From the sequence record OR770614.1: a stretch of DNA of 64,000 bases, one strand, 5' to 3'. This document shows, piece by piece, positions 8,343-46,908 of this stretch. The number at the start of each line of letters is the position of its first letter. Within the stretch, counting starts at the first letter, position 1. Under the pieces are notes generated by a model. It had not been told where the DNA came from. It made no database searches and was given only the letters and a program-made list of their open reading frames with translations. The position numbers and the translations under genes are program-made.

Positions 8343-9041
8343 TTAAATAAATGCATTTTTAATTTTTGCTTTTCTTTCTATATCTTTGAATTCATCTTCT
8401 TCTATAAAATCAAAATTATAATTAGACATTAATGCATAAGTCAATGTATTAAAAATAGGACTTTTCTTACAATATTCTTCTCCTAAATTACTTATCAAAT
8501 CTATTATAGAACAAGTGTCTTCATCATTATAATTCTTTATATTAATTATTATTCTATCTCGTTTTCTATTTTTAGGTTTACTTAATGTAAATATATAGGT
8601 ATACTTATCCCTTAAATATTTTATTTCTTTATGAATATTTTTTATTAATAATTCAGCTTGTTCTTTTTGTTCTTTATTACTAATCATGAATTCAAAGCTC
8701 ATATTTAATAATGCTCTTTCATCATTAGGATTATAAGGTCTATTGTAATTACTTTTATATAACACTATATTTAAAAAGCCTTCATTGTTATAATAATCCA
8801 TATTATTATAATCATTTAAAGATTTCAGTATATCAACTATAGTTTCTTTATTTATAAAAGTTTTTAAATAATCTAAATGTTTATCACTTAATTTTACTGA
8901 TTTATTAAAATTGTTAATCATATTTGGTATTCTTAAATAAACTGGATTATCTTTATATAGATCACATAATTGATTAAAACTTAAAGGAATTACTCTAGGA
9001 CCTATTAGTTCTTTTTCTTTAAGTATTCTGATATTAATCAC
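8343..9041 (-). CDS. Hypothetical protein, C-terminal-tag family (divergent copy)
   Basis: Ends FIEEDEFKDIERKAKIKNAFI*. Confidence 0.7.
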   Translation of the reverse strand: MINIRILKEKELIGPRVIPLSFNQLCDLYKDNPVYLRIPNMINNFNKSVKLSDKHLDYLKTFINKETIVDILKSLNDYNNMDYYNNEGFLNIVLYKSNYNRPYNPNDERALLNMSFEFMISNKEQKEQAELLIKNIHKEIKYLRDKYTYIFTLSKPKNRKRDRIIINIKNYNDEDTCSIIDLISNLGEEYCKKSPIFNTLTYALMSNYNFDFIEEDEFKDIERKAKIKNAFI

Positions 9042-9054
9042 TTTCTTTCTATTA

Positions 9055-9717
9055 TTATATAAATAATTCTTTAGTTAATATTGATTTATATTCTTTTTTA
9101 TCTATACTTTCTATAAAATTTCTATGATCCAAAAGAACTTTTATCTCATTATTGAATTTATTATAATCATCTGCATATACTGCAATATTATCCAAAATGA
9201 ATTGAATGATCTTAATATAGTTTGAGTAAAATAAATTCTCTATAAATTCATCTATTTTATTTTTATCTATTAAAAATATTAATGTCAAATCTAATACATA
9301 CTCTGTATTGTAATGATCCAGAGAAACAGATTTTAAAAAATCTAGATCAATTTCATGTATACTATCTATAAATTCTTTTTCGTTTTCAATTAAATCTGAA
9401 TAACTTTTTAAACTGAAATACATATTCATTATATATCTATTTTTAGATGTTTTACTAATAAAAAATTCTAATTTACTATTAAAGAAATCCATATGAACTA
9501 CTTTCATATTTTCTCTATTAAGAATTTCAAATATTTTATTAGCTATACATTTAGATGCTTTTTCCATATTATTAATTTCTTCATCAGAATTAATTAAATA
9601 AATTGATCTGTCTTTATTATCATTAAAATCATAGATCTTTTTATTACCATTGGCACTTCTCTTATGATAAAATATATTTACATTTTCTTTGTTAAAACGA
9701 TATAAGTAGTTAACCAT
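9055..9717 (-). CDS. Hypothetical protein, C-terminal-tag family
   Basis: Ends IDKKEYKSILTKELFI*. Confidence 0.75.
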   Translation of the reverse strand: MVNYLYRFNKENVNIFYHKRSANGNKKIYDFNDNKDRSIYLINSDEEINNMEKASKCIANKIFEILNRENMKVVHMDFFNSKLEFFISKTSKNRYIMNMYFSLKSYSDLIENEKEFIDSIHEIDLDFLKSVSLDHYNTEYVLDLTLIFLIDKNKIDEFIENLFYSNYIKIIQFILDNIAVYADDYNKFNNEIKVLLDHRNFIESIDKKEYKSILTKELFI

Positions 9718-9794
9718 AAAAGCATCTCATCCATTTCTATATTATAATATAATAAAAAGTTACTATATTATTTATGGATGAGATGTTATATAAT

Positions 9795-10637
9795 CTATTT
9801 AAAACTTTCTTTTACTGCTATCTTCTTATATTCATCTTCTGGTACAAAAGTTATTTTTTCTTTATTTTTATTAATAATATCTTTATATGATATAGAATCT
9901 AAATTATCTATTACTTCATCTTTAAAATATAAAGAATATAATTCAATACCTTTTTTATCTCTAAAGAAATTGCAATTTAGTATTTCATAATTATATTTTT
10001 TCATTAAAACTGATAAGAAATTATTTAATTCTTCTTTATTAGGAATTAAAAAGAATTTCATATTTTTCATTTCTTTATTATTTATACGATCTCTCCTAGA
10101 TATATTGATATATGAAGTTATTGTTTTTGAAATAACTTCATATAATTTATTTGGAGATGAATAATTATTAAAAAGATAAGGATTGATTTGCTTTCTATTT
10201 TTACCTTTTACATAATTATCTAATTTAAATTGATACTCTTTAAATCTATTTAATATTCTTTTATTTACTTTATTAGATAAAATTAAATAATAACTTTCTT
10301 TAGTACCACGATTTTCTATATATAATATATCTATTCTATTGTCTATATCCTTTTTAACATGTCTAAATAATTTTTTATTAAATAATTGCATTACTTCACT
10401 TATGTCAAAATAATTATCACTATATCTTTCATCTTCAGGTACAATATCATGTACAAATATTGTACCTACTTGGGGCATAAATTTTCCATCATTTTTATAA
10501 TTTGAATTATAATCTACAACAGAATTGATAAAGAATTTATAAAAATTATCATCTTCATTATTTTTATACAACATATTCAATTTTGTATTCTCATTATCCT
10601 TTTTAGTTAGTCTTTTATCTATTTTAATGATTTCCAT
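9795..10637 (-). CDS. Hypothetical protein, C-terminal-tag family
   Basis: Ends VPEDEYKKIAVKESFK*. Confidence 0.75.
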   Translation of the reverse strand: MEIIKIDKRLTKKDNENTKLNMLYKNNEDDNFYKFFINSVVDYNSNYKNDGKFMPQVGTIFVHDIVPEDERYSDNYFDISEVMQLFNKKLFRHVKKDIDNRIDILYIENRGTKESYYLILSNKVNKRILNRFKEYQFKLDNYVKGKNRKQINPYLFNNYSSPNKLYEVISKTITSYINISRRDRINNKEMKNMKFFLIPNKEELNNFLSVLMKKYNYEILNCNFFRDKKGIELYSLYFKDEVIDNLDSISYKDIINKNKEKITFVPEDEYKKIAVKESFK

Positions 10638-10655: not shown

Positions 10656-11195
10656 TTATTTAAATGTCTCTTTTACTATAAATTTTTTGTATTCTTCCTT
10701 AGACATATCATCTATATATCCTTTATATTCATATAAATTATAATCAGAACTATAGAAAATAACATCTTCTTCCTCTCCATCATGTTCTGGAAGAAAATCA
10801 AAATTGTATGAAAAAACTATATACATATCTTCTTTAATATTACGTATATAGCTATTAAATATAAATTTATTCATATTTTTACTTTCTAAGAAACTAATAT
10901 TTTTAGTATATTCTTCTCCATTTTCATGAATGTGAATTATATTATTTAAATGATTATCTTCAACCCATTCAGGACTATTCTCAAATGATATATGTTTAAC
11001 TACTTCATTATTCATATTTATTAATTTAAAATTAATTAATACGTTTCCTGGTGTAGTTTCTACATTATGTTTAAATCTATAAAACATATAAGTGTCAATA
11101 ATTTCTTTATTTGAAATTTCTCCTTCATCTCTTGTTAAATGAAATATGTCAAAGTGACCGTCTTGTTCTATTCTAAATTTTTTATTGATTTCCAT
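10656..11195 (-). CDS. Hypothetical protein, C-terminal-tag family
   Basis: Ends MSKEEYKKFIVKETFK*. Confidence 0.75.
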   Translation of the reverse strand: MEINKKFRIEQDGHFDIFHLTRDEGEISNKEIIDTYMFYRFKHNVETTPGNVLINFKLINMNNEVVKHISFENSPEWVEDNHLNNIIHIHENGEEYTKNISFLESKNMNKFIFNSYIRNIKEDMYIVFSYNFDFLPEHDGEEEDVIFYSSDYNLYEYKGYIDDMSKEEYKKFIVKETFK

Positions 11196-11196: not shown

Positions 11197-11823
11197 TTAT
11201 TTAAATCCCCTTTTTATTAATTCATTTTTATATTCTTTTTCATTAATTTCTTGTATTCTAGTATTTATAATATTCATAAAATTGTATAACCTCATATTAT
11301 TAACTTTATACATTCTTGCATTATTTCCATTATCATAACCAATATTATTATTTATAGGTTCGATAATTTCTTTAGAGTTACAATGTGAAATTAATTCAAA
11401 TACGATATTTCTATTTTCACTTATATCGATAATTAATTCTAGGTTTGAAAATTCTAAATCTAAATTATTAATATCTTCTTTAATTAGATTAAATATATTT
11501 TTAGAATTTTCTATATCATGGGTCAATCTATAATAATCTCCATATATGTCTTCCCTAAATAAACCTATATTACCTTTTGATATTATATGATATTTAAATT
11601 CTATAATATTTCTTAAACTATTCAATTCAATAGTGATTGTGTTATATTTAATTATTTTTCTCATTCTATCAGTATAAAATTCATTGAAAAATTGTTCAAA
11701 TAAAATAATATTTAATTCTTGAGAATCAATACTATCTTTATTTTGTTTATATGGTAATTTTAGTGTATCAATATTTTTAAAATTTCTTAATAAACCTCTA
11801 AAATCCAACATGAAATAATTCAT
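11197..11823 (-). CDS. Hypothetical protein, C-terminal-tag family
   Basis: Ends INEKEYKNELIKRGFK*. Confidence 0.75.
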   Translation of the reverse strand: MNYFMLDFRGLLRNFKNIDTLKLPYKQNKDSIDSQELNIILFEQFFNEFYTDRMRKIIKYNTITIELNSLRNIIEFKYHIISKGNIGLFREDIYGDYYRLTHDIENSKNIFNLIKEDINNLDLEFSNLELIIDISENRNIVFELISHCNSKEIIEPINNNIGYDNGNNARMYKVNNMRLYNFMNIINTRIQEINEKEYKNELIKRGFK

Positions 11824-12261: not shown

Positions 12262-12277
12262 TTATAATATATACTTA
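12262..12277 (-). promoter_or_regulatory. Early-type promoter motif TAAGTATATATTATAA
   Basis: One of about 13 intergenic copies of TAA(A/G)TATATATTATAA upstream of - strand genes. Confidence 0.65.
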
Positions 12278-13116: not shown

Positions 13117-13449
13117 TTATACAAAACTATTTAATTCCTTCATATGATAACTTCCTAATTCTAATTTAAGATGAAAGTTCTCTATCATTTTACAATTTAA
13201 ACCATATTCTTCTAATAATTCTACATTAATAGTTTCTTCATTAATTTCCAATATCTCTTTTAATGTAAATATATCTGAAGATACTACTGTTAGAGAATCC
13301 GCTAAATTATCAAGATCTTTTTCTCTAGAATCATCTATATTATAGAAGAAACTTTCTTCCATCAAATGCTTGCAATTAGATATAACAATTAAGTCTCCTA
13401 CAATTTTATCATAAACTCTATCTAAAACTTTTTTACTATCTTTTAACAT
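13117..13449 (-). CDS. Hypothetical protein
   Basis: Start MLKDSK follows GGAG; the ORF-track extension to 13500 runs into the promoter region. Confidence 0.55.
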   Translation of the reverse strand: MLKDSKKVLDRVYDKIVGDLIVISNCKHLMEESFFYNIDDSREKDLDNLADSLTVVSSDIFTLKEILEINEETINVELLEEYGLNCKMIENFHLKLELGSYHMKELNSFV

Positions 13450-13521
13450 TATCCATTCCACTCCTATTATTTTAATTGGTATGAAGTTTATCAACTTCAT
13501 TTATATAATATATACTTATAA

Positions 13522-13992
13522 TTAATTTAAATATATATTTTTATTGTAATTATCCTTACCTAATTTATTACTTACATTAATATCAAATATTAAATTTCCA
13601 GTTACAGATTTATCTTTATTATTAATACTTTTTACTAACAACATTGTAATTGAATTATTGTAAGTTAAAGTTTCTATAGTTGTATATATTTTAGTATCTT
13701 TACTTATATCATCCTTTTTAATATTTCTTACTAATTTTAAATCTCCATTGTCTATTATAGTACCTACTTCTGTATCTAATATTTCAATAATACAATTAAC
13801 AAAATCTTCTGCTTTATGAAACAGATCGTGTTTTTCATTAAGAATATAAGTTCTATTTGGTTTAACTTCAGCTTCTTTATTAATTGTATTTAATGATTTA
13901 TATATGAAGTTATTAATATAATTTTGTGTAACTTCAACTGGCAATTTTAAATTATTATTTATTAATTTGTCTATATTCTTTTTATTCTTCAT
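13522..13992 (-). CDS. Hypothetical protein
   Basis: 156 aa ORF coupled to the upstream gene by an overlapping stop/start. Confidence 0.6.
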   Translation of the reverse strand: MKNKKNIDKLINNNLKLPVEVTQNYINNFIYKSLNTINKEAEVKPNRTYILNEKHDLFHKAEDFVNCIIEILDTEVGTIIDNGDLKLVRNIKKDDISKDTKIYTTIETLTYNNSITMLLVKSINNKDKSVTGNLIFDINVSNKLGKDNYNKNIYLN

Positions 13993-14444
13993 TATCTAAA
14001 ATTATCCTTTACTAAATTATTTTTATACTCTTTCTCTGTTATATCTTTTAAATTAAAATCCATTGAATTATGATACCCTTCACTGAGATTATTTTTAATA
14101 ATTAATAGTACTTTGTCTATTATTTTTATTAATCCTTCTTCATCTTCTGGAATAAGTATTGTATCATCATAATGTTGATCATATTCAAATTCATCTTTTA
14201 ATTTACTTAAAATTAAATTATTATCATCTTTAACTATTAAACCATCATCTTCTTCACTATAAAAGAAAAATATAGTACTTTCAGATAAATTTTCGATATC
14301 AAAAGATATTTCACTGTGTAAAGTTAATCCAAAACTATTCACCTTAAATATCTCACTTCTTATTAATTCATCAAAGACTATTTCTTTATTTTTGCCTTGA
14401 AAATAACATTCTTTTCCTCTTAAAATTGTTTTAAAGTATTTCAT
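13992..14444 (-). CDS. Hypothetical protein, C-terminal-tag family
   Basis: Starts MKYFK; ends ITEKEYKNNLVKDNFR*. Confidence 0.75.
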   Translation of the reverse strand: MKYFKTILRGKECYFQGKNKEIVFDELIRSEIFKVNSFGLTLHSEISFDIENLSESTIFFFYSEEDDGLIVKDDNNLILSKLKDEFEYDQHYDDTILIPEDEEGLIKIIDKVLLIIKNNLSEGYHNSMDFNLKDITEKEYKNNLVKDNFR

Positions 14445-17033: not shown

Positions 17034-17078
17034 TGAGTAATATTAATTAATATTACTCATTTTTATAATATATATTTA
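17034..17078 (-). promoter_or_regulatory. Early promoter plus 5' leader hairpin
   Basis: TAAATATATATTATAA-AAA-TGAGTAATATTAATTAATATTACTCA on the - strand. Confidence 0.6.
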
Positions 17079-18084: not shown

Positions 18085-18513
18085 TTATTCTTCAAATAAT
18101 TCTGGATCTGTTTCTGGAGTGATTTCTCTTGAAGTACTTCCTGGTTCACCTGGTGATTTAACTTCACCTTCTGCATCTAACTCTTCTTCACGGCCATTCG
18201 CTGAATATACTGATTCTTCTGTTGTTTCATTTTGTTGAACTTCATTACCAGTGTCTGCATTATTATTTTCTTCTACATTGTTATTTTTAGTTTGTTGATC
18301 ATTTTCATTTGTAGCTTGTTGTTGAGATTCTGTATTTTGATGTTGTTCTTTTTCTTTCTTATTCTCTTTTTCCTTTTTAACTTCTTTTTGCTCAGTTTGT
18401 AATTTTTGTTTTTCTAATTGTAAATCCTTATAACTTGTGTATGCAAATAAAGCTCCTACGAATAATACTGCTACTACCACAATTGCACCTAAACTTATTA
18501 ATAGTTTTTTCAT
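18085..18513 (-). CDS. Membrane-anchored low-complexity protein (paralog 3 of 3)
   Basis: MKKLLISLGAIVVVAVLFVGALFAYTSYKD anchor followed by a Q/E/N-rich tail. Confidence 0.7.
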   Translation of the reverse strand: MKKLLISLGAIVVVAVLFVGALFAYTSYKDLQLEKQKLQTEQKEVKKEKENKKEKEQHQNTESQQQATNENDQQTKNNNVEENNNADTGNEVQQNETTEESVYSANGREEELDAEGEVKSPGEPGSTSREITPETDPELFEE

Positions 18514-19062: not shown

Positions 19063-19653
19063 TTACATACCTTCGCCTGGTTCTGGAATTTCACCTCTTG
19101 ATGCTTTCTCATACATCTCTTTTTGCTTTTCATATTCTGCATCCATATCTTCTTCTTCAGAACCACTATGTTTTTCTTCTTCGCTCAATTCATATTTTTT
19201 ATGAAGTTCAGGATTCGCCATTTCAGGTGAAACTGGTTGGAATTTACCTTCTTCAGCTAATCTATTTAGCTCTGGTGTCATTTCATCTGTTGTGGCAATT
19301 CCATCTCCATTCTTATCAGCCTTAATAATTTCTTCTTTTATGCTTTGAGGATCATCTGCTTTTGGTTGGTCACTGTTATCAACTTCTTGAGTATTTTCAA
19401 CATTACTATTAACTTCTGTTGAATCTGAACTTTGTTCTGTTTCTAAAGATTGATTCTCTTCGTTGTTTACTTCTTTGTTATTTTCTTCGTTGTTATTTTT
19501 ATTAGGTTTTTCTTTAACTTCTTGTTTTTGTTCTGTCTTCAGTTCTTTATCATTACTTTTTATATTCTTATATTGACTGTATCCAAATAAAACTGTTACA
19601 CCTAATACCGCTAATAATACTATTACACCTAATACACCTAAAATTTTTTTCAT
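19063..19653 (-). CDS. Membrane-anchored protein with an EF-hand-like loop (paralog 1 of 3)
   Basis: Same anchor; DKNGDGIATTDE fits the 12-residue EF-hand calcium loop. Confidence 0.7.
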   Translation of the reverse strand: MKKILGVLGVIVLLAVLGVTVLFGYSQYKNIKSNDKELKTEQKQEVKEKPNKNNNEENNKEVNNEENQSLETEQSSDSTEVNSNVENTQEVDNSDQPKADDPQSIKEEIIKADKNGDGIATTDEMTPELNRLAEEGKFQPVSPEMANPELHKKYELSEEEKHSGSEEEDMDAEYEKQKEMYEKASRGEIPEPGEGM

Positions 19654-20206: not shown

Positions 20207-20404
20207 TTATTTCCAAAAATTTCCTTTCCTAATTTCTCCTACTGTATAATTAATTAATAATGATACAGCTGATAATACTAATCCAAGTGCTAAAGATTTT
20301 CCTTCTACGTATCCAATCATTTCTCCTATGATAAAACCAATTATAAAAGTAAACCAAAATAATATCCATGGCTTTATTTTCAATAATCTTTTTTCTTCAT
20401 TCAT
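20207..20404 (-). CDS. Small 2-TM membrane protein
   Basis: Two hydrophobic helices; resembles the next gene. Confidence 0.6.
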   Translation of the reverse strand: MNEEKRLLKIKPWILFWFTFIIGFIIGEMIGYVEGKSLALGLVLSAVSLLINYTVGEIRKGNFWK

Positions 20405-34433: not shown

Positions 34434-34454
34434 TTAAATTCTCCTCCTTTCTAT

Positions 34455-35105: not shown

Positions 35106-35169
35106 ACTATATCACCACACTTATATATTAATGAATTTATAATAATTACACGTTAGTTTCATTTATTAA

Positions 35170-35598: not shown

Positions 35599-35681
35599 CT
35601 CTCTTTAAATAAATATTTTAGAAAGATGTATAAATATCATACATCTCTCACAATTTTATAATATATATTTAAATTGAGTTT

Positions 35682-36131: not shown

Positions 36132-36145
36132 ATTATAAAACCTCT

Positions 36146-36616
36146 TTATTTAAAAATTTCTTTAATTTTATTAGCTTTATATTCCTTTTCAGTTATTTTT
36201 ATATAATCTTCATTAATTATTAATTCCATTTTATTAATACCTTCTAAATTGAATGTAAATTTATCGTTATATCCATGATTTCTTATATTATCATATATTT
36301 CATTCAAAGTTTCTTCACCGGTTAAATGCATGCTATTTTCCCATATTGCATAACTTTTAAGATCAATCCAGTAATTCACGTACGTGTTTTCTTCTTCATC
36401 TCTTAAAAAATTAGTTTCTATTTTTATAGGAAAATCTTTAATTAAATCAATTAATATAATTTCTTCATCTTCTTTTACATATAAAGATTCTAATAATTCA
36501 ATATCTTTACCGTCTTTCTTAAGATACCAATTTCTTTCCATTAATTGAGAATATACATCAGGATCAATAAATAAAATTTTAGATATTCCACTTTGGGTCA
36601 TTTTATAATATTTCAT
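36146..36616 (-). CDS. MKYY.../C-terminal-tag family protein
   Basis: MKYYKM...KITEKEYKANKIKEIFK*. Confidence 0.75.
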   Translation of the reverse strand: MKYYKMTQSGISKILFIDPDVYSQLMERNWYLKKDGKDIELLESLYVKEDEEIILIDLIKDFPIKIETNFLRDEEENTYVNYWIDLKSYAIWENSMHLTGEETLNEIYDNIRNHGYNDKFTFNLEGINKMELIINEDYIKITEKEYKANKIKEIFK

Positions 36617-36634
36617 TTTATATCTACTCCTTTT

Positions 36635-37087
36635 TTATTTAAAAGTTTCTTTGACCTTTAGATCTTTATACTCTTTTTCGGATACTTCTTCATAGTCAAT
36701 CCCTTCTGAGAGACTATATACACCTTCCTTTAATTTTTCAATTGAAAATTTTGTTTTAGATATTTTTTTATTTATTTTGTTATATATTTTTAATAAAGAA
36801 CTATTTTCATTCATTTTCATATTACTAACTTTACATATATGAAATTCTTCTTCTCCAATAAATACATACATATAACCATCTACATACATTTTTTCCTTTG
36901 GTCCTTTTCGAACACTATATTCTATACTTGGTGTTTTGTTTTCAATAATTTCTGATATACTAATTTCTTCATCTTCTCTTAAATAAAGATCTTCTTTTCT
37001 GAATAAATTATTGTAACAGTATACCATTTCACTATTAATACCTAAAATTTCAGACATTCCATATTGATTTATTTTATAATATTTCAT
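36635..37087 (-). CDS. MKYY.../C-terminal-tag family protein
   Basis: MKYYKI...EVSEKEYKDLKVKETFK*. Confidence 0.75.
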   Translation of the reverse strand: MKYYKINQYGMSEILGINSEMVYCYNNLFRKEDLYLREDEEISISEIIENKTPSIEYSVRKGPKEKMYVDGYMYVFIGEEEFHICKVSNMKMNENSSLLKIYNKINKKISKTKFSIEKLKEGVYSLSEGIDYEEVSEKEYKDLKVKETFK

Positions 37088-37103
37088 AATTTATTTCTCC
37101 TTT

Positions 37104-37535
37104 TTATTTAAAACTTTCTTTGATTTTATTATCTTTATATTCTTTTTCAGTAATTTCTACATATTGGATATTCTCTTTTAAATCATAAATTTCTTTATCT
37201 CTGCTAAAAATAAAATCTTTATTAAAAACTAAATCTTCTGCATGTTTATGAACTTCTTCAAGTGTATGATGTTTAAAATTATCTAAAATAATCTCTACAC
37301 TATTCGTTAAATATCCGCCTTTCATTTCTAAGTGAGCATCCATAGTTAAAGGTCTATTTGAATTTGTAAAGACGTTGAAATTAAGCTTTAAATTATCTTG
37401 ATCTTTAATCAAGTAACGTGTTTTAATGACTTCATTTTCTTCAAAACAAAAATTTTGTTTAAGATTATCATAACCACCACCATAAGTTTCTAAAATTTGA
37501 ACTACACCATCATTTATTAATTTATAATATTTCAT
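37104..37535 (-). CDS. MKYY.../C-terminal-tag family protein
   Basis: Start MKYYKL at 37535 after AAGGAG; ends EITEKEYKDNKIKESFK*; the in-frame upstream ATG at 37610 precedes a hairpin. Confidence 0.75.
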   Translation of the reverse strand: MKYYKLINDGVVQILETYGGGYDNLKQNFCFEENEVIKTRYLIKDQDNLKLNFNVFTNSNRPLTMDAHLEMKGGYLTNSVEIILDNFKHHTLEEVHKHAEDLVFNKDFIFSRDKEIYDLKENIQYVEITEKEYKDNKIKESFK

Positions 37536-37565
37536 TTTATAATATATCTCCTTTTTATTTATATA

Positions 37566-37604
37566 ATAAAATATCCCAATACCTATTAATTTAGGTATTG
37601 GGAT
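37566..37604 (-). terminator. Terminator-like hairpin inside the paralog array
   Basis: ATCCCAATACCTA-AATTAA-TAGGTATTGGGAT followed by ATTTTATT on the - strand. Confidence 0.65.
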
Positions 37605-37626
37605 TATCATAATTTATTTCTCCTCT

Positions 37627-38076
37627 TTATTTAAAGTTTTCTTTAACTTTATTTTGATAGTATTCTTTTTTAGATATTTCAATATAATGAATATCCTTCA
37701 ATAATTTAACTCCAATTTTTTCAAAATTAGTGAATGAAAATACATCATTCACTAATTTTCTTTTAATGATTTTAAATAATTCATTATCACACATTTTAGT
37801 ATCTTTTAAATTAATATTAATGCTATAAAGCATAGGAATATCATTATCTTTTTTATCTATAATTAAACAAGCTTTTCCTTTTTCATAACCTTTGTTAGAA
37901 ATATCAATTGAATTAACTTTTTCATCATAATCTTTTTCTATAAAATTGTAAAAAGGAATTTCTTCATCTTCTGTTAGATAAATATATCCACTTTTAAATA
38001 TATCAATAATATTGTTGGATCCATGTATACCTAATACTTCTGACATTCCTTTTTTATTAAGTTTATAATATTTCAT
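37627..38076 (-). CDS. MKYY.../C-terminal-tag family protein
   Basis: MKYYKL...EISKKEYYQNKVKENFK*. Confidence 0.75.
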   Translation of the reverse strand: MKYYKLNKKGMSEVLGIHGSNNIIDIFKSGYIYLTEDEEIPFYNFIEKDYDEKVNSIDISNKGYEKGKACLIIDKKDNDIPMLYSININLKDTKMCDNELFKIIKRKLVNDVFSFTNFEKIGVKLLKDIHYIEISKKEYYQNKVKENFK

Positions 38077-38077
38077 A

Positions 38078-40069
38078 TTATAATAGCTCTCCTTTGGAAT
38101 CTTCTACATTAATGATATTAATACCTTTTTCCTTAGCTTTCTTAATTTTAGTTGAACCTGAATTTGGATCCGGAGTAACTAATAAATCAGTCTTACCTGA
38201 AACTGATGAAGTTACTTTATGACCTTTAAGTTCTAACTGTTCTTTAAATTCAGCATCTCTAAATCCACTAAATACGATATTCATTGGCTCAACTGAATCA
38301 TCTTTATTAGCTTCCATTTCTTTTTTAAGTGATTTAACATCCAATTCATTAAATAAGAATTCAATTAAATCTTTATTCTGTTTATAACCGTTAATAATAA
38401 TCTCAGCAGTGATATCAGCGATTCCTTTAATAGAAGTTAAATCTTTAATACTTAAATCTGTATAATCTATTTCTTGTGGATCATAGACTTTAGTAACTAA
38501 TTTAAATGTAGTTCTTCCAACTCCGTTTAATCCTAATGAACCTAATACATCATAGTCATAATATTCTTTATTTTTATGAATTGTATTAATAATATTCTGA
38601 GCTGATTTTTCTTTAAATGTATCTACTTGCATGATATCATTTTTATCAATTTCATATAAACTTTGAATTCCATTAGGTAGTTTGTTACCTTTATAAAGTT
38701 TATTAATAGTAGAATATTCAATTCCTTTAATATCCATTTTATCCACATAATTGTTAATAATACCTAGTACTCTACATTCACAATCGTTATTAATGCATGA
38801 TACAAATGTTTCATTTTCATTAACCTCAAGTTCTTCCCCACAGTATACACACTCTTTAATGAACGGTATAGGTTCTCCAGTAATTTCGTTAGTAGGAGAC
38901 GGAGTTAAATAGCTTAAAACATCATTACGATACTCAATAATAACTTCTTGACCTTTAACTAATTGAAGTTCTTTAAATCGTTTATAGTTAGCAATTGAAA
39001 CACGTTCACATTTAGCACCATTAAAATAAATAGGTTCAAATCTAACTACAGGCGTGTAACGACCAGTTCCATTTTCAGACACATCAAATTCAATATCAAT
39101 AACATTAGTTTTCTTAGTCATATACGGAAATTTTAAAGCTACATCAAATTTATTACGATCATTTAATCTACCTAAACGATTTCTATCATCTTCATCAAGA
39201 GCTTCAATAACTAAACCATCAATCATGTATTCATAATACTCTCTTTCATCAGCTATTTGATGATATAATTCATTAAAGTCTTTATAATCGTGTTCATCTT
39301 CCATAACAAAATTATACTGTGGATCAAGTTGATCAAATACAGTACTATGACTAGTAATTGCTGAAATTAGATTTAATTCTTCTTGTCGAGTTAACTCTTT
39401 ATTGCTAATATTAATTCTCAATGGTAATAAATTAATTAATTTACGTTTCTTATATCCATCATCTGAGTTTAATAATCCGGCAACAATTGATCTAGGATTA
39501 GCATACTCCTCATCAATCTTATTAAAGTTACTATAACTCATTACTGCTTCACACTTAATAGCGATATCAATATTATCTTCAGATAAATCAACTGCATTAA
39601 TATCTACATCTGATTTTTTAATTTTAATATGGCTAAAGAAATCAGTTAAGTCAGCTCCTTTTCCATCTTTTCCTCTTGTTAAAGCTGATTTAGTTACTAA
39701 ATAATCTCCCTTAGTAGTTAAAATAACTAAAACACTATTACCGTCATATTTTTGAGTAATTAATAATTGTTTACCATTTAAACCTTTATCATATATCCAT
39801 TCTGATAGTTCTTCTACAGAATTAACCTTAGAAACTGTTCCTACTAATTCAGGATATTCATGAGAAACATCTACTAACTTTTTACCTTTAGAAGGTAAAG
39901 CTCCACCATTAAATGGTCTATATCGTTCATATTCTCTTAATAATTTGTCAAACTCTTCATCTGTTAACTCTGGTTGATCTGATGTGTTATAATATACATA
40001 AGATTGATCCTCTAAATATTTTTGTACTTCATCTAAATTACTTTCATTTACTTCGTTAAATTTTGTCAT
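38078..40069 (-). CDS. ligA: NAD-dependent DNA ligase
   Basis: YYNTSDQPELTDEEFD (domain Ia), KYDG adenylation motif, RGKDGKG, IDGLVI, CxxC zinc region, C-terminal BRCT (SSVSGKTDLLV...SGSTKIKKAKEKGI). Confidence 0.95.
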   Translation of the reverse strand: MTKFNEVNESNLDEVQKYLEDQSYVYYNTSDQPELTDEEFDKLLREYERYRPFNGGALPSKGKKLVDVSHEYPELVGTVSKVNSVEELSEWIYDKGLNGKQLLITQKYDGNSVLVILTTKGDYLVTKSALTRGKDGKGADLTDFFSHIKIKKSDVDINAVDLSEDNIDIAIKCEAVMSYSNFNKIDEEYANPRSIVAGLLNSDDGYKKRKLINLLPLRINISNKELTRQEELNLISAITSHSTVFDQLDPQYNFVMEDEHDYKDFNELYHQIADEREYYEYMIDGLVIEALDEDDRNRLGRLNDRNKFDVALKFPYMTKKTNVIDIEFDVSENGTGRYTPVVRFEPIYFNGAKCERVSIANYKRFKELQLVKGQEVIIEYRNDVLSYLTPSPTNEITGEPIPFIKECVYCGEELEVNENETFVSCINNDCECRVLGIINNYVDKMDIKGIEYSTINKLYKGNKLPNGIQSLYEIDKNDIMQVDTFKEKSAQNIINTIHKNKEYYDYDVLGSLGLNGVGRTTFKLVTKVYDPQEIDYTDLSIKDLTSIKGIADITAEIIINGYKQNKDLIEFLFNELDVKSLKKEMEANKDDSVEPMNIVFSGFRDAEFKEQLELKGHKVTSSVSGKTDLLVTPDPNSGSTKIKKAKEKGINIINVEDSKGELL

Positions 40070-40073
40070 TATC

Positions 40074-40781
40074 TTATTTCTCTCCTTTAATATATAGATT
40101 TGTATAGTGATTATTTAATTTATTTCCATCTTTTCTACGTATATATGTTGCATATACTTCTTTATTTAAGAAATTTTCTAGTACTAATTTTTTAATTAAG
40201 AATAAAGGATTTTCTTTATAATTTGATATATTAACATAAGGTTCTTCACCTATAAAATTGATAGGTAATAATTTATTCGTGTTTGTATTTTTAACTCTTC
40301 CATAGCTACTTAATATAAAATTATCATAACATTTAATATTAGTCCATTCTTCATTATTTTCATCGTATATTAATTCTTTATTCAAATTATTTAAAACACC
40401 TTTAATTCTTCTAATTGATGTGTGGTTATTAATATTAAATTTATCAGATAATTGTTCTTTATCATTGTTTTTTAAAAGTATCTTAATCTCTTCTATATCT
40501 TTAATAGAATATTTTCTTATAGGTGTATATTCTAAATTATCTTTATGAACATTTAATGAATTCCCATCTTTGTAATGTAAATGTTTATAATTATTTTGAT
40601 TATCTAAAAATGTTTCAGCTACTATTCTATCAACTCTTTGTAATTTTCTACCATTCATATTAAAATGTAAATGGTTATTAACTGGAAAAATACTTACATA
40701 AATATCTTCGTATTCATTGTATATATTACCTTTTTCACTAATTATATACCTTTCATCTTTTGGGTATTGTTTCCATTTCAT
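40074..40781 (-). CDS. Tandem NUMOD4-HNH protein, likely catalytically degenerate
   Basis: Two WKxx...Y.IS..G.(I/V) plus (R/K)(I/L)V.E.FL...KDGN.LN....NL modules; the usual HNH histidines are replaced. Confidence 0.7.
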   Translation of the reverse strand: MKWKQYPKDERYIISEKGNIYNEYEDIYVSIFPVNNHLHFNMNGRKLQRVDRIVAETFLDNQNNYKHLHYKDGNSLNVHKDNLEYTPIRKYSIKDIEEIKILLKNNDKEQLSDKFNINNHTSIRRIKGVLNNLNKELIYDENNEEWTNIKCYDNFILSSYGRVKNTNTNKLLPINFIGEEPYVNISNYKENPLFLIKKLVLENFLNKEVYATYIRRKDGNKLNNHYTNLYIKGEK

Positions 40782-40799
40782 ATTTTTTCCATCTCCTTA

Positions 40800-41029
40800 T
40801 TAATATAAAAACGTATTGTACAACAAATCAAAAACAAAAATGGCTATTACACATACTATAAATGAAATCAATGTTATCAACGATCCCATAAATAATATGT
40901 GAGAATCTTTTACACAGATTCCCACAACAAGTGCAATTATTCCTACAATTATACTTATTATTGATCCCATTATTAAAATGCTATTAATGCAAGAATGAAA
41001 TTTACTGCAATTACCATTATCTTTTCCAT
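40800..41029 (-). pseudogene. Small membrane-protein gene with one frameshift in a T4 run (or a sequencing error)
   Basis: AAGGAG RBS, MEKIMVIAVNFILALIAF then TAA; adding one T at 40975-40978 gives a continuous 76 aa hydrophobic ORF. Confidence 0.5.
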
Positions 41030-41059
41030 CTCCTTATTTATAAAAAAATTATTAAATTA

Positions 41060-41111
41060 AGAGTAATGATGAAGTTAATCATCATTACTCCATTTTTATA
41101 ATATATATTTA
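41060..41111 (-). promoter_or_regulatory. Early promoter plus GAGTAATGA-family 5' hairpin
   Basis: TAAATATATATTATAA-AAATG-GAGTAATGATG-ATTAACTT-CATCATTACTC on the - strand. Confidence 0.65.
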
Positions 41112-41122
41112 AATATTAATTT

Positions 41123-41320
41123 CTAAAAAGAAGTCAAATGCCAGTATATAATAAATGTCAATGATAATGATAATACTATTTTTATTAAATCTATTTTTAT
41201 ATCTTCTCTAAACGTTTTATTAAAAATTGAAATAAATAAAAATGAAATTTCTGATATAGAAAAACTTAAACTAATAATACCAATCCAAAATAAAATAATC
41301 ACATATATACCTAACAGCAA
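41123..41320 (-). CDS. Small membrane protein
   Basis: Two hydrophobic helices. Confidence 0.5.
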   Translation of the reverse strand: MLLGIYVIILFWIGIISLSFSISEISFLFISIFNKTFREDIKIDLIKIVLSLSLTFIIYWHLTSF

Positions 41321-42495
41321 CTTAAAAACATCCTTTCTCGTTTATCTTCTTCCACTTTATTAAATAAAGGACCAAAATATAAATTATTGCTTATTTTTTT
41401 ATTTTCTTTTTCATATTCGAAAATTTCATATAACATATTGAAAGTAAAATTATTACTTCTTATATAAGGAGTATCGTATAAGTTTGATACTTTATAAACA
41501 TTCATGATGTAATATTTGATAGCTTCTAAGAAATTGTTGAATTTATATTCTTTATCATTTCTAAATAATCTTAAATAAAAATTATTTGAAAGATTAAAAT
41601 CATATAGATTTTCAATTTTAACAAGAGTATTAAATAGATGATTATTTTTATGATCTTTATGATTTTCTATCAAATTATCTTCAATAATCTCAGTATCTAA
41701 AAATGTAAATTCATTTCTTCCTCTAGTATGATCAATAATATTATGAATATTACCATTCATCATTAAATTTAAAATTAAACCATTACTATATTTATTATCT
41801 AAATTCACAAATTCATTAATAAAATCTGAAAACGTATCTTCTGAAAAGAAAAAGCGTGTAAAGTTACTTCCAATATCATCCGATGGTTCTATATATTCAT
41901 AATAATCATCAACATTATCAGTATCAAGAAAAATAGTAGACATCTTTGAAGTGTAGTATTTTTCATCTCCATTTAATTCATTAAAGAAATTATTATTTTT
42001 AGAAAATTCTTTAATTAATTTTTTATTAAAATTGTATGGATGTACAGTTAATGCCCCTAAAGAACTCATTAAATCTTCATCAGTTAAAATATTTAAATAT
42101 AGCAATAATGTCTTAATATAAGATATTGAAACTACAAAATCTTTTCTTTCATAATTTTTAAAATTCTTTTCCATATCTAAAAATATTTCATATTGATTTA
42201 CTTCATTTCCTTTAATTAAATTACCTAAATACATTATTATTAAATCATCATTATTTTCATTTGATAATTCAATTAATGTATCTTTATATTCATTTAATTT
42301 ATTTTCTATATCTTTATAAAATGTAGATGTTTTTCTAAAGAAAGATTTACCATTAAAATAAAAATAAATTAGGTAATCCATTAATTCTTCAAATAATAAT
42401 TTTTCATCTTTTTTAATTTTATCTTTATTAATCATTATATTATTATATTTATTCTCAATTAATAACAAATCTTTTTCTTCAATTACATATTTCAT
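41311..42495 (-). CDS. Hypothetical protein
   Basis: 394 aa ORF with GGAG RBS. Confidence 0.65.
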   Translation of the reverse strand: MKYVIEEKDLLLIENKYNNIMINKDKIKKDEKLLFEELMDYLIYFYFNGKSFFRKTSTFYKDIENKLNEYKDTLIELSNENNDDLIIMYLGNLIKGNEVNQYEIFLDMEKNFKNYERKDFVVSISYIKTLLLYLNILTDEDLMSSLGALTVHPYNFNKKLIKEFSKNNNFFNELNGDEKYYTSKMSTIFLDTDNVDDYYEYIEPSDDIGSNFTRFFFSEDTFSDFINEFVNLDNKYSNGLILNLMMNGNIHNIIDHTRGRNEFTFLDTEIIEDNLIENHKDHKNNHLFNTLVKIENLYDFNLSNNFYLRLFRNDKEYKFNNFLEAIKYYIMNVYKVSNLYDTPYIRSNNFTFNMLYEIFEYEKENKKISNNLYFGPLFNKVEEDKRERMFLSCC

Positions 42496-42509
42496 ATCTC
42501 TTTCATCTC

Positions 42510-43217
42510 CTAATTAAATGATTTTGATGCATAATGTGTTTTTAATTTTTTAGATATGTGCTCTCTATCTTTTTTATTTATTTGATTAAATAATTTTAGA
42601 TTGATATTTTCCATTTCTTTAATTGAATCTAATCTTGAGGCATAATCATCTAGTAATTCCATAACACGAGCTCCATTCATTATTGAATTATTAAATGAAT
42701 CTTCACTTACTAAAAAATCTTTATCAGATACTATTTCAGAATTCATGACAATCTTAAAACTAGTATTTTTAGTATATTCTGAATTAATAGATTTTAAATA
42801 ATTTATTAAAGTTTCTACTATTAAGAATAATTTTAGTTTTACTCTACTTAATATTAGATGACTATCATTCGCATTTATTTCAAATCTATGGTTAAAATGC
42901 GAATATACAATATTAAACAATTTCTTTTCATTATAGTAATTTATTACTTCTTTAAGAGATTCTATACCTAGTCTACCAGATAATGCATATTGAAACGCAG
43001 TAACTAAGAGTAATTCATATTTTCTAGCATTATCAAACAATTCGCTTTCATCCATTTCATTTTCTTGTTGTTTAATCATAGGTATTAGTCTATCTATTTT
43101 TTCTGAATCACTTATTTTACTTTTGTATTTATTTTTCATTTCTTTAGTATCCATATAATCCTTTAGAACTATTTCAGTTCTAATGGATGTATTAGGATTT
43201 TTATTATAATTATACAT
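42510..43217 (-). CDS. Hypothetical protein (weak C-terminal tag)
   Basis: Ends KLKTHYASKSFN*. Confidence 0.6.
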   Translation of the reverse strand: MYNYNKNPNTSIRTEIVLKDYMDTKEMKNKYKSKISDSEKIDRLIPMIKQQENEMDESELFDNARKYELLLVTAFQYALSGRLGIESLKEVINYYNEKKLFNIVYSHFNHRFEINANDSHLILSRVKLKLFLIVETLINYLKSINSEYTKNTSFKIVMNSEIVSDKDFLVSEDSFNNSIMNGARVMELLDDYASRLDSIKEMENINLKLFNQINKKDREHISKKLKTHYASKSFN

Positions 43218-43231
43218 AGTAAATTCTCCTT

Positions 43232-43789
43232 TTATTTAAAATTATTTCTGACTAGATATTTTTTAACTTCTCTTTCAAAATGATTCACTATATTATCTTC
43301 AAAGAATTCTCTTTCTTTTTTAATATATTCAATCAATGCTTTTATATACATAATATAGTTTATTGAGATTATTTTATCAAGTTTCTCATTATAATAAATA
43401 TATATCGTATTAGATTCAGAACTAAATTCGCTAAGAGTTTCTGCTTTAGATTTAAACTGATCTTTCATCATTTCTATAAAATTATCAAATGCAAATTTAT
43501 TATTAAACGTACCTTCCATAATTGTATATAAACCGTAATCGTATATTGAATGTCTAATAACTTCTTCTAAACTTACTGATGGTATAATAGTGCCGATATT
43601 CCTATTTCTTAACTCATTTGCTTTATTTTTAAGAATATACGTTAAAATCTCATTTTGACTATTAACTTTATTATACATATCCCTTTTTTCTTTAATAGAC
43701 ATTTTATTAATAATATTATCAAAATCATCAATATTCTTTTTAAAAATATCTACATTAAAAGTTTTATCTACGTCTATTTCAGCATTCAT
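43232..43789 (-). CDS. Hypothetical protein, C-terminal-tag subfamily 2
   Basis: Paralog of 43805-44353; ends EREVKKYLVRNNFK*. Confidence 0.7.
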   Translation of the reverse strand: MNAEIDVDKTFNVDIFKKNIDDFDNIINKMSIKEKRDMYNKVNSQNEILTYILKNKANELRNRNIGTIIPSVSLEEVIRHSIYDYGLYTIMEGTFNNKFAFDNFIEMMKDQFKSKAETLSEFSSESNTIYIYYNEKLDKIISINYIMYIKALIEYIKKEREFFEDNIVNHFEREVKKYLVRNNFK

Positions 43790-43804
43790 AAAATTTATCT
43801 CCTT

Positions 43805-44353
43805 TTATTTAAAATTATTTTTAACTAGGTAATTTTTATACTCTTTTAAAATATCATTAACTAATTCTTCTCCATAAAAATGTCTTGCACTGTCAAAATA
43901 ATTAATTAAAGACTTTAAGTACATTAAATAATCAACTTCGATTAATTTATTTAATTTAGTATTAAAATAAATATGTACAACGCCTTCAGATCCTCTTGAA
44001 AATTTATCTAGTTCTGATTGATTTTCATTTTTCTCAAATCCTCTTTTAATATTATTTGCAAAATGGTCAAAATTTAATTTCCCATTACTTGTAGTTAAAT
44101 TAATAGTTAACATCGAATATACATCATAATCATTTAATATATGTTTAATAAAAAACTCTAAACTATCAGCTTCTAAAATCCTACCTAATTGGTTAATCAT
44201 TAATTCTTTTTTATAATCTTTATATAGGTTAGTAAATAAATCACTTTCATTTTTACTTTTCTTGTATAAATTTCCTGCTTCTTCAAAATTTAAATTATTA
44301 ATAGTACTATAAAATGCAGATAAATCTTTTCTAAGTTTTTCTTCACCAAACAT
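43805..44353 (-). CDS. Hypothetical protein, C-terminal-tag subfamily 2
   Basis: HIYFNTKLNKLIEVDYLMYLKSLINY aligns with 43232-43789; ends LKEYKNYLVKNNFK*. Confidence 0.7.
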   Translation of the reverse strand: MFGEEKLRKDLSAFYSTINNLNFEEAGNLYKKSKNESDLFTNLYKDYKKELMINQLGRILEADSLEFFIKHILNDYDVYSMLTINLTTSNGKLNFDHFANNIKRGFEKNENQSELDKFSRGSEGVVHIYFNTKLNKLIEVDYLMYLKSLINYFDSARHFYGEELVNDILKEYKNYLVKNNFK

Positions 44354-44369
44354 AATAATCCTCCTTATT

Positions 44370-46268
44370 CTATCTAAACATTATATTTACAATTTCATTT
44401 CTAAAAGCTTTATCTAATTCTCTAGCTTCATCTGGAAAGAATTTACCTATATATCTACATAATTCTCTAAAGAATTCTGGTAGAGTTAAATGAGTTAATT
44501 CAATACCGTCATATGATATTATGAAGTGATTAGTTTCATAATATGTATTTTTATTATTTGAAACCTTATCAGAAATATTTTTTACTAATCGTTTAGCAAC
44601 AGAATTAATTTTTAAATCAAATTTTATATTAATACCAGAATCTTTTAAAAGACCCAGACTCATTTTTTCTTCAAAGTAACTATCTAAATCTTTATAATAA
44701 AATCTACTAGCATTTACGTCAATATCATATTTAAAGTTATTGAATATTTTATCAATTTCTTCAATTTTACTTGCAGCATAAGAACTATTTTTATACATTA
44801 ATGGTTCTATAATACTATTAGACGTTACATCTATAATATTTATTCTATTTATATTCTTATTACTAAATACCGAATTAGAATTTAATTCTATACCAGCCTT
44901 TATTAATTCATCTATTTTAAAATCAGAATGATCTCTAGTTAATAATTTATTTTCTTTAATAAGGTTAATATTTCTTCTAAGTTTACTAGGTGTATTACTA
45001 AGAATTAATTTGAAAAGTGATTTTATAGTTTCAAATTCAAATTTCTTTAATTTAGAAGGATTATATAAGTATTTATCTATTAATCCATAGAAATACTTGT
45101 GTTCAATTATACAGATATCATTAGTTAATAAGTTATACGATTCTAAGTTACAAATTTTACTAATTCTTCTATTTTCAGTTAAACTTGTTTTATTCACATA
45201 TAAATCATTTATATAATTACCTAATAAGATATTATAATAATTATTGCCATCCATGCATTTTTTAAGGATATTTAATTTAGTATCTTTTAAATCAAATTCA
45301 TTTTTATAATTTGAATCATAATTTTTATATCCTTCATCTTTGGTTGATGTGAATAACCATTCAGGTAAGAAGTTGTCCATTACAGCATATTTCTTTATAT
45401 TATTTTTACTACTATTATCATTAATAAAAGTAAATGCTTTAGTTAATATATATTCAAATTTATCAAAGTTCATATCTACAACAATTTCAAACATATCTGG
45501 AGCTATACCTTTACGATAATCAACTGACTCACTATAATAATTATTGATATGCTTTCCTGGTTTTAAATCATTAATTAAAATACTAAGTTCTTCTTTTCTA
45601 TTTTTGTTAATTTTACAATCTATATACTCTATTATTAGATTCATAAAATAATCATTTAAATTCACATTTTTATTTTTAATATAAATCTTGTCTAAATTAT
45701 TTTTAGAAATATAAGATAATTGTAGGTATGAGAAGATTAAATTAAATAAAAAGAAATCTCTATCTATTTTCTTTATATTTCCATTTTTACATTTATTGAT
45801 TCCTTCTGATAAACTATATGGAACTAACAAACTATAATAAAAATTAAAAAGACTATTTTTACTTAAGTATTCTTCAATTAAACTAATATTATCTCTAGTA
45901 TCAAATATAGATCTATTTAACATTGCTTCTAAACTACTAATCATTTCTGAATACATAATTTTTGTTGTACTGTCTAAATTTTGTTTATCTATTTGATCAC
46001 TTAGGTATTTTATTGAATTTAAATAATCTTCTTTCTTTGGATTCTGTAAGTGAACATTAGATTGTTCCTTTAGACCTTTTGCTTCTTGTACAGACATTTT
46101 ATTTATATTTTCAATAACATCAGAAAAGAAATCATTAAATTTAGTTTTAATATTATCATTATAGAATTCAAATATATTATCTACATTAATACCATTATTA
46201 TCAATATATTCCAATTTATCAATTATGTCATTTATTAAGTCTCTATGAACTGCCATTATCATATTCAT
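44370..46268 (-). CDS. Large hypothetical protein related at both ends to subfamily 2
   Basis: N-terminal INKMSVQEAK matches INKMSIKEKR; ends AFRNEIVNIMFR*. Confidence 0.65.
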   Translation of the reverse strand: MNMIMAVHRDLINDIIDKLEYIDNNGINVDNIFEFYNDNIKTKFNDFFSDVIENINKMSVQEAKGLKEQSNVHLQNPKKEDYLNSIKYLSDQIDKQNLDSTTKIMYSEMISSLEAMLNRSIFDTRDNISLIEEYLSKNSLFNFYYSLLVPYSLSEGINKCKNGNIKKIDRDFFLFNLIFSYLQLSYISKNNLDKIYIKNKNVNLNDYFMNLIIEYIDCKINKNRKEELSILINDLKPGKHINNYYSESVDYRKGIAPDMFEIVVDMNFDKFEYILTKAFTFINDNSSKNNIKKYAVMDNFLPEWLFTSTKDEGYKNYDSNYKNEFDLKDTKLNILKKCMDGNNYYNILLGNYINDLYVNKTSLTENRRISKICNLESYNLLTNDICIIEHKYFYGLIDKYLYNPSKLKKFEFETIKSLFKLILSNTPSKLRRNINLIKENKLLTRDHSDFKIDELIKAGIELNSNSVFSNKNINRINIIDVTSNSIIEPLMYKNSSYAASKIEEIDKIFNNFKYDIDVNASRFYYKDLDSYFEEKMSLGLLKDSGINIKFDLKINSVAKRLVKNISDKVSNNKNTYYETNHFIISYDGIELTHLTLPEFFRELCRYIGKFFPDEARELDKAFRNEIVNIMFR

Positions 46269-46299
46269 CTCCTATTTATAAAAAATACTGATTTAACTA

Positions 46300-46908
46300 T
46301 TAAATAAAATTATCTTTTACTGCATATTTATTCATTTCTTTAATTAATGATTCAACTATTTCTTCTTTTAATGAATCTAATAAAAACTTCTCTAAAGAAT
46401 CTATAAATTGTTTGTATGTTAATTCTTTCCATTCTGATTTAATATTAATATATAAAGATCTATTTTCTTTACTAAATGCTTCATATTCTTTATAAAATAC
46501 TTTAGCAATTTCTTTGAATGTCTTCTTACTAATTATAGGTAATTCTTCTACATTATCTAAGAAGAAATAATATAGAGGATATACTTCATCTTCTGTATAT
46601 ATTTTAGAATCTATAGATATTTTTATAGTATGTGCATCCAATTTTTCTTTACCACTATTGTTATACAGAGATATATCTCCTATTTCTAAATTATTTAAAC
46701 TCATATCACTATTTTCCTCCATATCTTTAGATTCAGTAGATGGTGTTTCCCAAACTTTAGTAGTAGAAAAAAGATTATTTTGAGATGGAAGATTATAATT
46801 TACTCTTTTTGCATCTGTATGAAATACAACATTATCTGTATCTATATCAAATCTTTCAGCTAATTTTTTATATGTTTCTTTAAAATCTCTATTAATTTTA
46901 ATCACCAC
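46300..46908 (-). CDS. Hypothetical protein, C-terminal-tag subfamily 2
   Basis: Ends LIKEMNKYAVKDNFI*. Confidence 0.7.
   Translation of the reverse strand: MVIKINRDFKETYKKLAERFDIDTDNVVFHTDAKRVNYNLPSQNNLFSTTKVWETPSTESKDMEENSDMSLNNLEIGDISLYNNSGKEKLDAHTIKISIDSKIYTEDEVYPLYYFFLDNVEELPIISKKTFKEIAKVFYKEYEAFSKENRSLYINIKSEWKELTYKQFIDSLEKFLLDSLKEEIVESLIKEMNKYAVKDNFI

Follow-up and report, generated by a model that had tools for sequence, protein, structure and literature searches.

A constant C-terminal peptide on hypervariable early proteins of Staphylococcus jumbo phages

The ankyrin-repeat proteins of poxviruses carry a C-terminal PRANC/F-box-like module that docks onto one host hub; they form a multigene, fast-evolving viral family in which a variable body is joined to a constant C-terminal module. 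Encapsulin cargo peptides and the capsid-targeting sequence of phage T4 are short terminal peptides on unrelated proteins in HK97-type shell systems, AAA+ adaptor tethers and C-terminal degrons lie at the extreme C-terminus and combine a near-terminal hydrophobic residue with basic ones, and substrates of type IV secretion carry a loosely conserved C-terminal signal on many unrelated proteins, with a single receptor for the secretion signals. In Bacillus phage G, a zinc ribbon has expanded to approximately 35 copies (PMC7824862). The subject of this analysis is a C-terminal tail of approximately 16 residues, close to [IV][ST]EKEYKxxx[VI]KxxF[KR], that is shared by 18 genes in a 64,000-nucleotide stretch of sequence record OR770614.1 (the window) and by further genes of the same phage. 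The window belongs to the genome of vB_StaM_PB50 (OR770614.1, 273.7 kb; window positions 28000-48000 match at 100% identity, and the record coordinate equals the window coordinate plus 62000), an AR9/PBS1-like Staphylococcus jumbo phage with a GC content of ca. 22% that encodes split virion and non-virion multisubunit RNA polymerases, an NAD-dependent ligase, UvsX and TelA. All 18 tail-bearing window genes carry the annotation "hypothetical protein"; together with their counterparts elsewhere they constitute a lineage-specific set of early, soluble, hypervariable proteins with a constant C-terminal module.

The tail is real and strictly C-terminal. The original prediction, made from the letters of the window, had counted about 16-18 such genes in four clusters, encoding proteins of 142-632 amino acids (aa); all 18 open reading frames (ORFs) were recovered on the minus strand with these positions and lengths, and the four tails quoted as examples were exact. 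Phenylalanine is the penultimate residue in all 18 members, against 8 of the 79 other likely genes; the latter count is about twice the expectation (examples are 61243-61518, 20404-20661 and 13117-13500, minus strand), and a few of these Phe-ending non-members, such as 61243-61518, could be degenerate members. For every member, the only match to a hidden Markov model (HMM) of the last 20 aa lay at the exact C-terminus, with 8-30 bits; the top score among non-members was 5 bits. With a position-specific scoring matrix (PSSM) of the last 16 residues, applied leave-one-out, 15 of 18 members scored at least 12 bits, compared to maxima of 9.7 bits in 16,945 internal windows and -4.2 bits at the C-termini of the 79 other likely genes; neither the HMM nor the PSSM found internal or N-terminal copies of the tail in any of the 18 members. 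Two members are borderline or degenerate, and 8343-9041 fits only with a four-residue insertion. The tail is also found in orthologous arrays of the phages S6, SA1, AH12, LY01 and MarsHill. The window members are listed here by coordinates; body groups (G numbers) are defined further below by comparison of the proteins without their tails.

8343-9041, minus strand: tail gene, 232 aa, the weakest member; ends in KIKNAFI; HMM score 8-10 bits
9055-9717, minus strand: tail gene, 220 aa; ends in KKEYKSILTKELFI; orthologues in AH12, LY01 and SA1
9795-10637, minus strand: tail gene, 280 aa; ends in EDEYKKIAVKESFK; body group G09
10656-11195, minus strand: tail gene, 179 aa; ends in KEEYKKFIVKETFK; body group G07
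11197-11823, minus strand: tail gene, 208 aa; ends in EKEYKNELIKRGFK; the C-terminal 120 aa weakly match the small-type profile
13992-14444, minus strand: tail gene, 150 aa; KYF N-terminus; ends in EKEYKNNLVKDNFR; aligns over its full length
34455-35105, minus strand: tail gene, 216 aa; degenerate tail IKEYRSIFVNSLFS; S6 orthologue 55% identical
35170-35598, minus strand: tail gene, 142 aa; ends in EKQFNNLIVTNSFK; first gene after the promoter at 35656
35682-36131, minus strand: tail gene, 149 aa; KYYR N-terminus; ends in EKQYKNIMVKDSFK; unusually conserved, 92.6% to S6
36146-36616, minus strand: tail gene, 156 aa; belongs to the small KYYK type and is paralogous over its full length to 36635 and 37627
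36635-37087, minus strand: tail gene, 150 aa; confident structure model
37104-37610, minus strand: tail gene, 168 aa; ends in EKEYKDNKIKESFK; hydrophobic N-terminal extension of 25 aa, KYYK from residue 27
37627-38076, minus strand: tail gene, 149 aa; ends in KKEYYQNKVKENFK; directly downstream of the DNA ligase
42510-43217, minus strand: tail gene, 235 aa; degenerate tail THYASKSFN; C-terminal HMM score 17 bits
43232-43789, minus strand: tail gene, 185 aa; without the KYYK motif; paralogue of 43805 (E 1e-29)
43805-44353, minus strand: tail gene, 182 aa; mostly helical, low-confidence structure model
44370-46268, minus strand: tail gene, 632 aa, the largest in the window; ends in AFRNEIVNIMFR
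46300-46908, minus strand: tail gene, 202 aa; ends in EMNKYAVKDNFI; body group G04

Extension of the tail scan to the rest of the PB50 genome added approximately 19 genes, raising the total to about 37 of 290 genes from the 16-18 first counted. These include 13 consecutive tail-bearing genes at record positions 243-254 kb, two at 137-140 kb and an 82-aa gene at record 838-1086, and three further genes of 167, 414 and 739 aa are probable members; the tagged PB50 proteins span 82-739 aa. Among 91 tails from six phages, the best-conserved columns are Phe at position -2 (share 0.99), a hydrophobic residue at -11 (0.96), V/I at -6 (0.90) and Lys at -13 (0.78), together with basic residues at -10 (0.81), -5 (0.73) and -1 (0.67); given the Lys or basic shares at -13, -10 and -5, several of the best-conserved columns are charged.

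The codon pattern indicates what is being conserved. The earlier claim that codons vary holds for V/I at -6, which is encoded by GTA, GTC, GTT, ATT, ATA and ATC, but not for the penultimate Phe, which is always TTT. Synonymous differences account for 12% and non-synonymous differences for 34% of comparisons among tail codons, against 8% and 54% in the 32 codons just upstream; because the codons of the conserved tail change synonymously, selection acts on the peptide, as had been proposed, and by this measure the last 16 residues of the tagged proteins are shown to be under purifying selection as a peptide. The same evidence bears on the idea that the gene ends are conserved as a nucleic-acid element, i.e., as a promoter, a terminator, a translational-coupling site or a recombination boundary for cassette exchange. 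Tight gene packing (13-20 nucleotides to the next start), AT-rich DNA and the single Phe codon would suit such an element, yet several codons are used per conserved residue, conservative replacements (I/V, K/R, Y/F) are common, synonymous differences are enriched in the tail, and the tail is also found on the last genes of arrays and on isolated genes; the only feature common to the sequences after the stop codons is a ribosome-binding site, and the real promoter motif is a different, intergenic 15-mer. A nucleic-acid element is scarcely credible under these circumstances.

Compared to the tail, the bodies diverge strongly. Tail identity exceeded body identity in 14 of 17 orthologue groups from six phages. 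Between PB50 and S6, the ligase is 96.7% identical and the beta-prime subunit of the non-virion RNA polymerase (nvRNAP) 84-88%, whereas the tagged proteins show 33-55% identity, with one exception at 92.6%; ligase identity across ten Staphylococcus jumbo phages is 91-97%. The array that follows the ligase holds two tagged genes in LY01, seven in PB50 and eight in S6, and orthologues of 44370-46268 are limited to 10 Staphylococcus jumbo phages, with identities of 29-38% in eight. The tail is retained in each of the 10 known Staphylococcus jumbo phages, in contrast to the diverging bodies. No tail-bearing ORFs were found in the syntenic regions of Bacillus phage AR9 (30 kb) and Listeria phage LPJP1 (42 kb). 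DNA-pattern scans yielded no matches in IMG/VR or in 185,579 species genomes, and no true match in JGI metagenomes; since the patterns fix codon choice, this absence is weak evidence. The single metagenome hit was rejected as a chance match, located on an AT-rich, mitochondrion-like contig outside any ORF. A 32-column profile of the tail alone was compared to 1.84 billion representatives; its single hit at E <0.001 was a member of the same family, and the profile is too short to inform on distribution. As far as these searches show, nothing outside the Staphylococcus jumbo-phage clade carries the feature; no description of the tail motif was found in the literature searched.

The original prediction had regarded the tagged proteins as otherwise dissimilar and impossible to align over most of their length. 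Once the last 22 residues were removed, the 91 tagged proteins of the six phages formed 36 BLAST groups. All-versus-all hhalign comparison merged only the small KYYK groups, over approximately 16-60 N-terminal columns, and three other pairs; the links among G00, G03, G13, G17 and G19 run through the N-terminus. More than 620 remaining body pairs had hhalign probabilities below 15%, leaving approximately 30 groups without profile similarity. The profiles are shallow, and the result is therefore a lower bound on relatedness. Most bodies are indeed unalignable, even profile against profile, but 36146/36635/37104/37627 and 43232/43805 are full-length paralogues, an N-terminal motif is common to many members, and the claim of dissimilarity was overstated for proteins that occur in tandem arrays with array-specific tail subtypes. 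An N-terminal aromatic hairpin of the KYYK-x-N-x-x-G type is present in about 25 of the 37 PB50 members, and the tail subtypes track the arrays (EKEYK..VKE.FK beside the ligase, DEKEIKNYLVK.NFK at 243-254 kb); the shared hairpin and the array-following subtypes point to local duplication, and since approximately two-thirds of the members share the hairpin, many tagged proteins are probably diverged tandem paralogues. A full-length HMM of the small type recruited no other tagged proteins. In the members without the hairpin (43232, 43805, 44370, 46300, and others at two further genome loci), a helix-like sequence runs into the tail. The AH12 orthologue of 37104-37610 has an N-terminal extension similar to that in PB50. 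Also within a tagged array, the 394-aa gene at 41311-42495 (minus strand) lacks the tail; with 34% identity to S6, it is as hypervariable as its neighbours.

The AlphaFold2 model of 36635-37087, built from ten sequences, is a beta-rich alpha/beta protein (predicted local distance difference test, pLDDT, 85; predicted template-modelling score 0.75) in which KYYK residues form strand 3-6 and the tail forms helix 137-148 after strand 132-135; pLDDT is 94 at residues 131-140 and 69 at residues 141-150. In this model the tail is a helix that follows a well-placed strand, and no floppy appendage. Foldseek searches with the model found no fold match in the PDB (best E 0.46, template-modelling score <0.3) and just three orthologues, 28-30% identical, in BFVD. 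The model of 43805-44353, built from three sequences, is mostly helical (pLDDT 54.5), with the tail ending helix 162-178, its most confident region; it is a hint that a second structural class may exist. When 36635, 43805 and the tail region of 13992 were used as queries in word-indexed protein searches, only one to five close relatives were found, and these few relatives account for the shallow AlphaFold2 alignments and the poor 43805 model. In Pfam-A, no family reached the cut-off for the 37 members, with isolated hits above E 1e-4 only; the weak hits (DUF4275, DUF4304 and others, E 0.01-0.6) were dismissed as noise. A PHROGs scan of 20 members returned one hit (E 0.007) and no significant match, and transmembrane segments were found in none of the members.

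The body comparison and the models together address the possibility that the tail is a structural remnant: all members would descend from one ancestor with one fold, and the hairpin plus the C-terminal strand and helix would form its folding core, with no common partner. The tandem arrays with their local paralogues, the aromatic hairpin in about 25 of 37 members, the N-terminal links among the five body groups and the pLDDT of 94 for the pre-tail strand and the start of the helix are consistent with this explanation. The size range of 82-739 aa, however, the helical-looking members (43232, 43805, 46300, 44370 and others) that lack both the hairpin and the pre-tail strand, the more than 620 body pairs of low hhalign probability and the charge of several best-kept tail columns all argue against it, as does the BFVD search, which gave only three close orthologues although other tagged proteins would be expected in that database. 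A structural remnant is a possible explanation, though a doubtful one, and the strongest competitor of the docking reading set out further below.

The expression class of the tagged genes is indicated by their promoters. A 15-mer containing TATATTAT occurs in the window in nine exact copies and three copies with one mismatch, all 12 of them intergenic and on the minus strand. Its core is identical to that of the early promoters annotated in AR9; a matching early-promoter motif has been reported upstream of 29 genes in MarsHill, and a review assigns this type of motif to the early promoters of the virion RNA polymerase. The motif precedes every tagged array, in the window and elsewhere in the genome; the copies ahead of the window arrays are as follows.

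12262-12276, minus strand: early-promoter motif, one mismatch to the 15-mer; ahead of the 11905-9795 operon
17063-17077, minus strand: early-promoter motif, exact 15-mer; ahead of the operon holding 13992-14444
35656-35670, minus strand: early-promoter motif, exact 15-mer, intergenic; ahead of 35170 and 34455
41096-41110, minus strand: early-promoter motif, exact 15-mer; ahead of the HNH endonuclease, the ligase and the 37627-35682 array
50011-50025, minus strand: early-promoter motif, exact 15-mer; ahead of the nvRNAP beta pieces and the 46300-42510 array

All minus-strand positions of the 15-mer AAATATATATTATAA, exact or with one mismatch (12262, 17063, 22943, 23941, 25971, 33909, 35656, 41096, 50011, 58997, 62436 and 63261), provide a ready map of the early operons in the window. 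The start codon of 37627-38076 ends one base before the stop codon of the ligase, and this gene therefore looks co-transcribed with it. In phage SA1, transcriptome sequencing classified the ligase and TelA as early, and UvsX and the nvRNAP subunits as "middle"; the SA1 paper has no per-gene table, so that the temporal class of the tagged genes rests on promoters and named neighbours.

These expression data, combined with virion proteomics, weigh on one destination that the original prediction had named for the tail, the capsid, from which tagged proteins would be co-injected in the manner of T4 internal proteins or be loaded like encapsulin cargo. PB50 has an HK97-type head, and a short terminal peptide shared by varied proteins would fit such a signal; however, every tagged array lies behind early promoters, and the arrays adjoin the ligase, nvRNAP pieces and an SbcC-like ATPase, away from the major head gene at record positions 38.9-40.5 kb. 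Liquid chromatography-mass spectrometry of SA1 virions detected 52 proteins, some of them virion-unrelated. Only one of at least 22 verified SA1 tail-bearing genes is represented among them (SA1 record 54343-54927); this protein, which belongs to the helical-looking 43232/43805 group, speaks for the capsid by its presence, and was detected weakly (three matches, 13% coverage). Among 15 proteins detected in DC4 virions, none comes from the DC4 array between UvsX and ligase, the stretch that was compared. Both virion datasets are shallow; it is their combination with the early promoters that makes a packaging signal very unlikely, and routing to the capsid was not borne out.

What stands of the proposed address label for one partner is a strictly C-terminal, selected peptide on mostly unalignable bodies; the capsid option falls away, and the label itself is an interpretation. 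As the most likely reading, with about an even chance, the constant tail module would serve to dock these hypervariable early proteins to a single invariant, putative partner. The tail is seen here as a helix that closes with Phe and then Lys/Arg, and that follows a short strand in most members. The arrays would have expanded through gene duplication and later divergence, and some fusions to unrelated bodies would have occurred; the variable bodies would engage diverse and fast-changing host targets in the service of host takeover or anti-defence; and the tail, joined in most members by the N-terminal hairpin, would perform one common task, by docking every member onto a single conserved partner that could belong to the phage core proteins or to the conserved hubs of the host (for example, a protease, a chaperone or a polymerase). 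The more far-reaching version, in which a phage-wide docking peptide tethers approximately 37 hypervariable early effectors to one invariant candidate hub, is less likely than not. The hub may be a host AAA+ protease or unfoldase, a polymerase, or the phage GroEL-like chaperonin; a chaperonin of this kind has been detected in DC4 virions.

As a caveat, several observations weigh against docking. The partner is so far hypothetical; in the 36635 model, the pre-tail strand and the initial half of the tail helix are placed like an ordinary part of the fold; and the tandem arrays, array-specific tail subtypes and common hairpin would fit plain paralogy without any docking. Shallow hhalign profiles could miss remote homology among the bodies, and the 43805 model, which is needed for showing a different fold, has low confidence.

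Two further functions of a terminal helix have to be considered next to docking to a hub. As a degron, the tail would be read by a host AAA+ protease, and the early proteins would be cleared together as the late phase begins. The extreme C-terminal position, the invariant hydrophobic residue beside the free end, the basic last residue and the restriction of the tail to early-operon genes agree with this function, but 16 conserved residues plus a helix N-cap exceed the needs of known terminal degrons; a degron is improbable, and would in any case be a special case of docking, not a true alternative to it. Alternatively, the tail could act as an amphipathic helix and recruit early proteins to the cell membrane, as its Y, I/L, V and F residues plus several lysines might suggest. 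The net charge of approximately +1, the conserved Glu residues, hydrophobic positions that do not form one clean face and the lack of transmembrane segments make membrane targeting exceedingly unlikely.

Approximately one-eighth of the genes in these therapeutic-candidate phages belong to the tagged set, all of them "hypothetical" and outside Pfam and PHROGs, and the tail is a simple sequence handle for listing such genes in new genomes. A constant module on hypervariable early proteins marks a site of the phage-host arms race. If the tail docks on a single partner, the identity of this partner would give a mechanism to dozens of orphan genes; phages would then follow the "variable target binder plus constant hub adaptor" logic of the F-box-like families of eukaryotic viruses, a modular effector architecture so far undescribed for phages.

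Some features of the surrounding window are recorded here. The nvRNAP beta-prime gene is split into pieces (window 27936-32600, minus strand), two of which flank a 504-aa homing endonuclease (28282-29796), and an HNH endonuclease (40074-40781) lies immediately upstream of the ligase. A very acidic 204-aa ORF (7540-8154, minus strand), in which GAAGAAGATG is repeated seven times between 7653 and 8007 ahead of an E/D/S-rich tail, lies where the plus-strand late block meets the minus-strand early block. A two-gene module appears to be duplicated (20667-21600 and 22301-22940, minus strand): the C-terminal halves of the 74-aa ORFs 21376-21600 and 22716-22940 are almost identical, 20667-20990 resembles 22301-22609, and a promoter-like motif lies upstream of each copy (21603, 22943). 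Between 18000 and 20000, the local GC fraction rises to 0.30 with a strong AT skew, and ORFs 18085-18513, 19063-19653 and 19731-20012 have Pro/Glu/Gly-rich ends, unlike the remainder of the window.

Among described systems, the closest analogies would be multigene families of viruses in which a constant C-terminal module docks to a hub, along with cargo-loading peptides and the tethers of protease adaptors, although membership of the PB50 set in any of these is not established. Like the encapsulin cargo peptides, the PB50 tail is a short C-terminal peptide, found across approximately 30 body groups without profile similarity; in contrast to them, the tagged genes are not adjacent to the shell gene. 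The T4 capsid-targeting sequence is N-terminal and cleaved by the prohead protease, whereas the PB50 tail occupies the extreme C-terminus; a T4-like signal would also imply late expression with the head genes, whereas the PB50 arrays follow an early-promoter motif, and carriers of either type of signal would be expected inside particles, whereas tagged proteins are almost absent from the two virion proteomes, shallow as both are. With the AAA+ adaptor tethers and C-terminal degrons, the tail shares its place at the free C-terminus, a hydrophobic residue near the end (Phe at -2, share 0.99 of the 91 tails) and a basic final residue (0.67); it is longer than these signals, helical with a capping motif, and distributed over approximately 37 proteins. 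Type IV secretion signals are compositional, whereas the PB50 tail is a fixed motif on cytoplasmic early proteins for which no secretion apparatus is implicated. The poxvirus ankyrin/PRANC proteins resemble the PB50 set in pairing variable bodies with a constant C-terminal module in a fast-evolving multigene family; the differences are that the tail has no Pfam relation to their module, that the host is a bacterium, that approximately 16 residues take the place of a domain, and that the partner is hypothetical. Finally, the zinc ribbons of phage G provide a precedent for a large paralogous expansion limited to one jumbo-phage lineage; there, the whole small domain is conserved, whereas in the PB50 set only the termini are conserved and the bodies have diverged beyond profile recognition.

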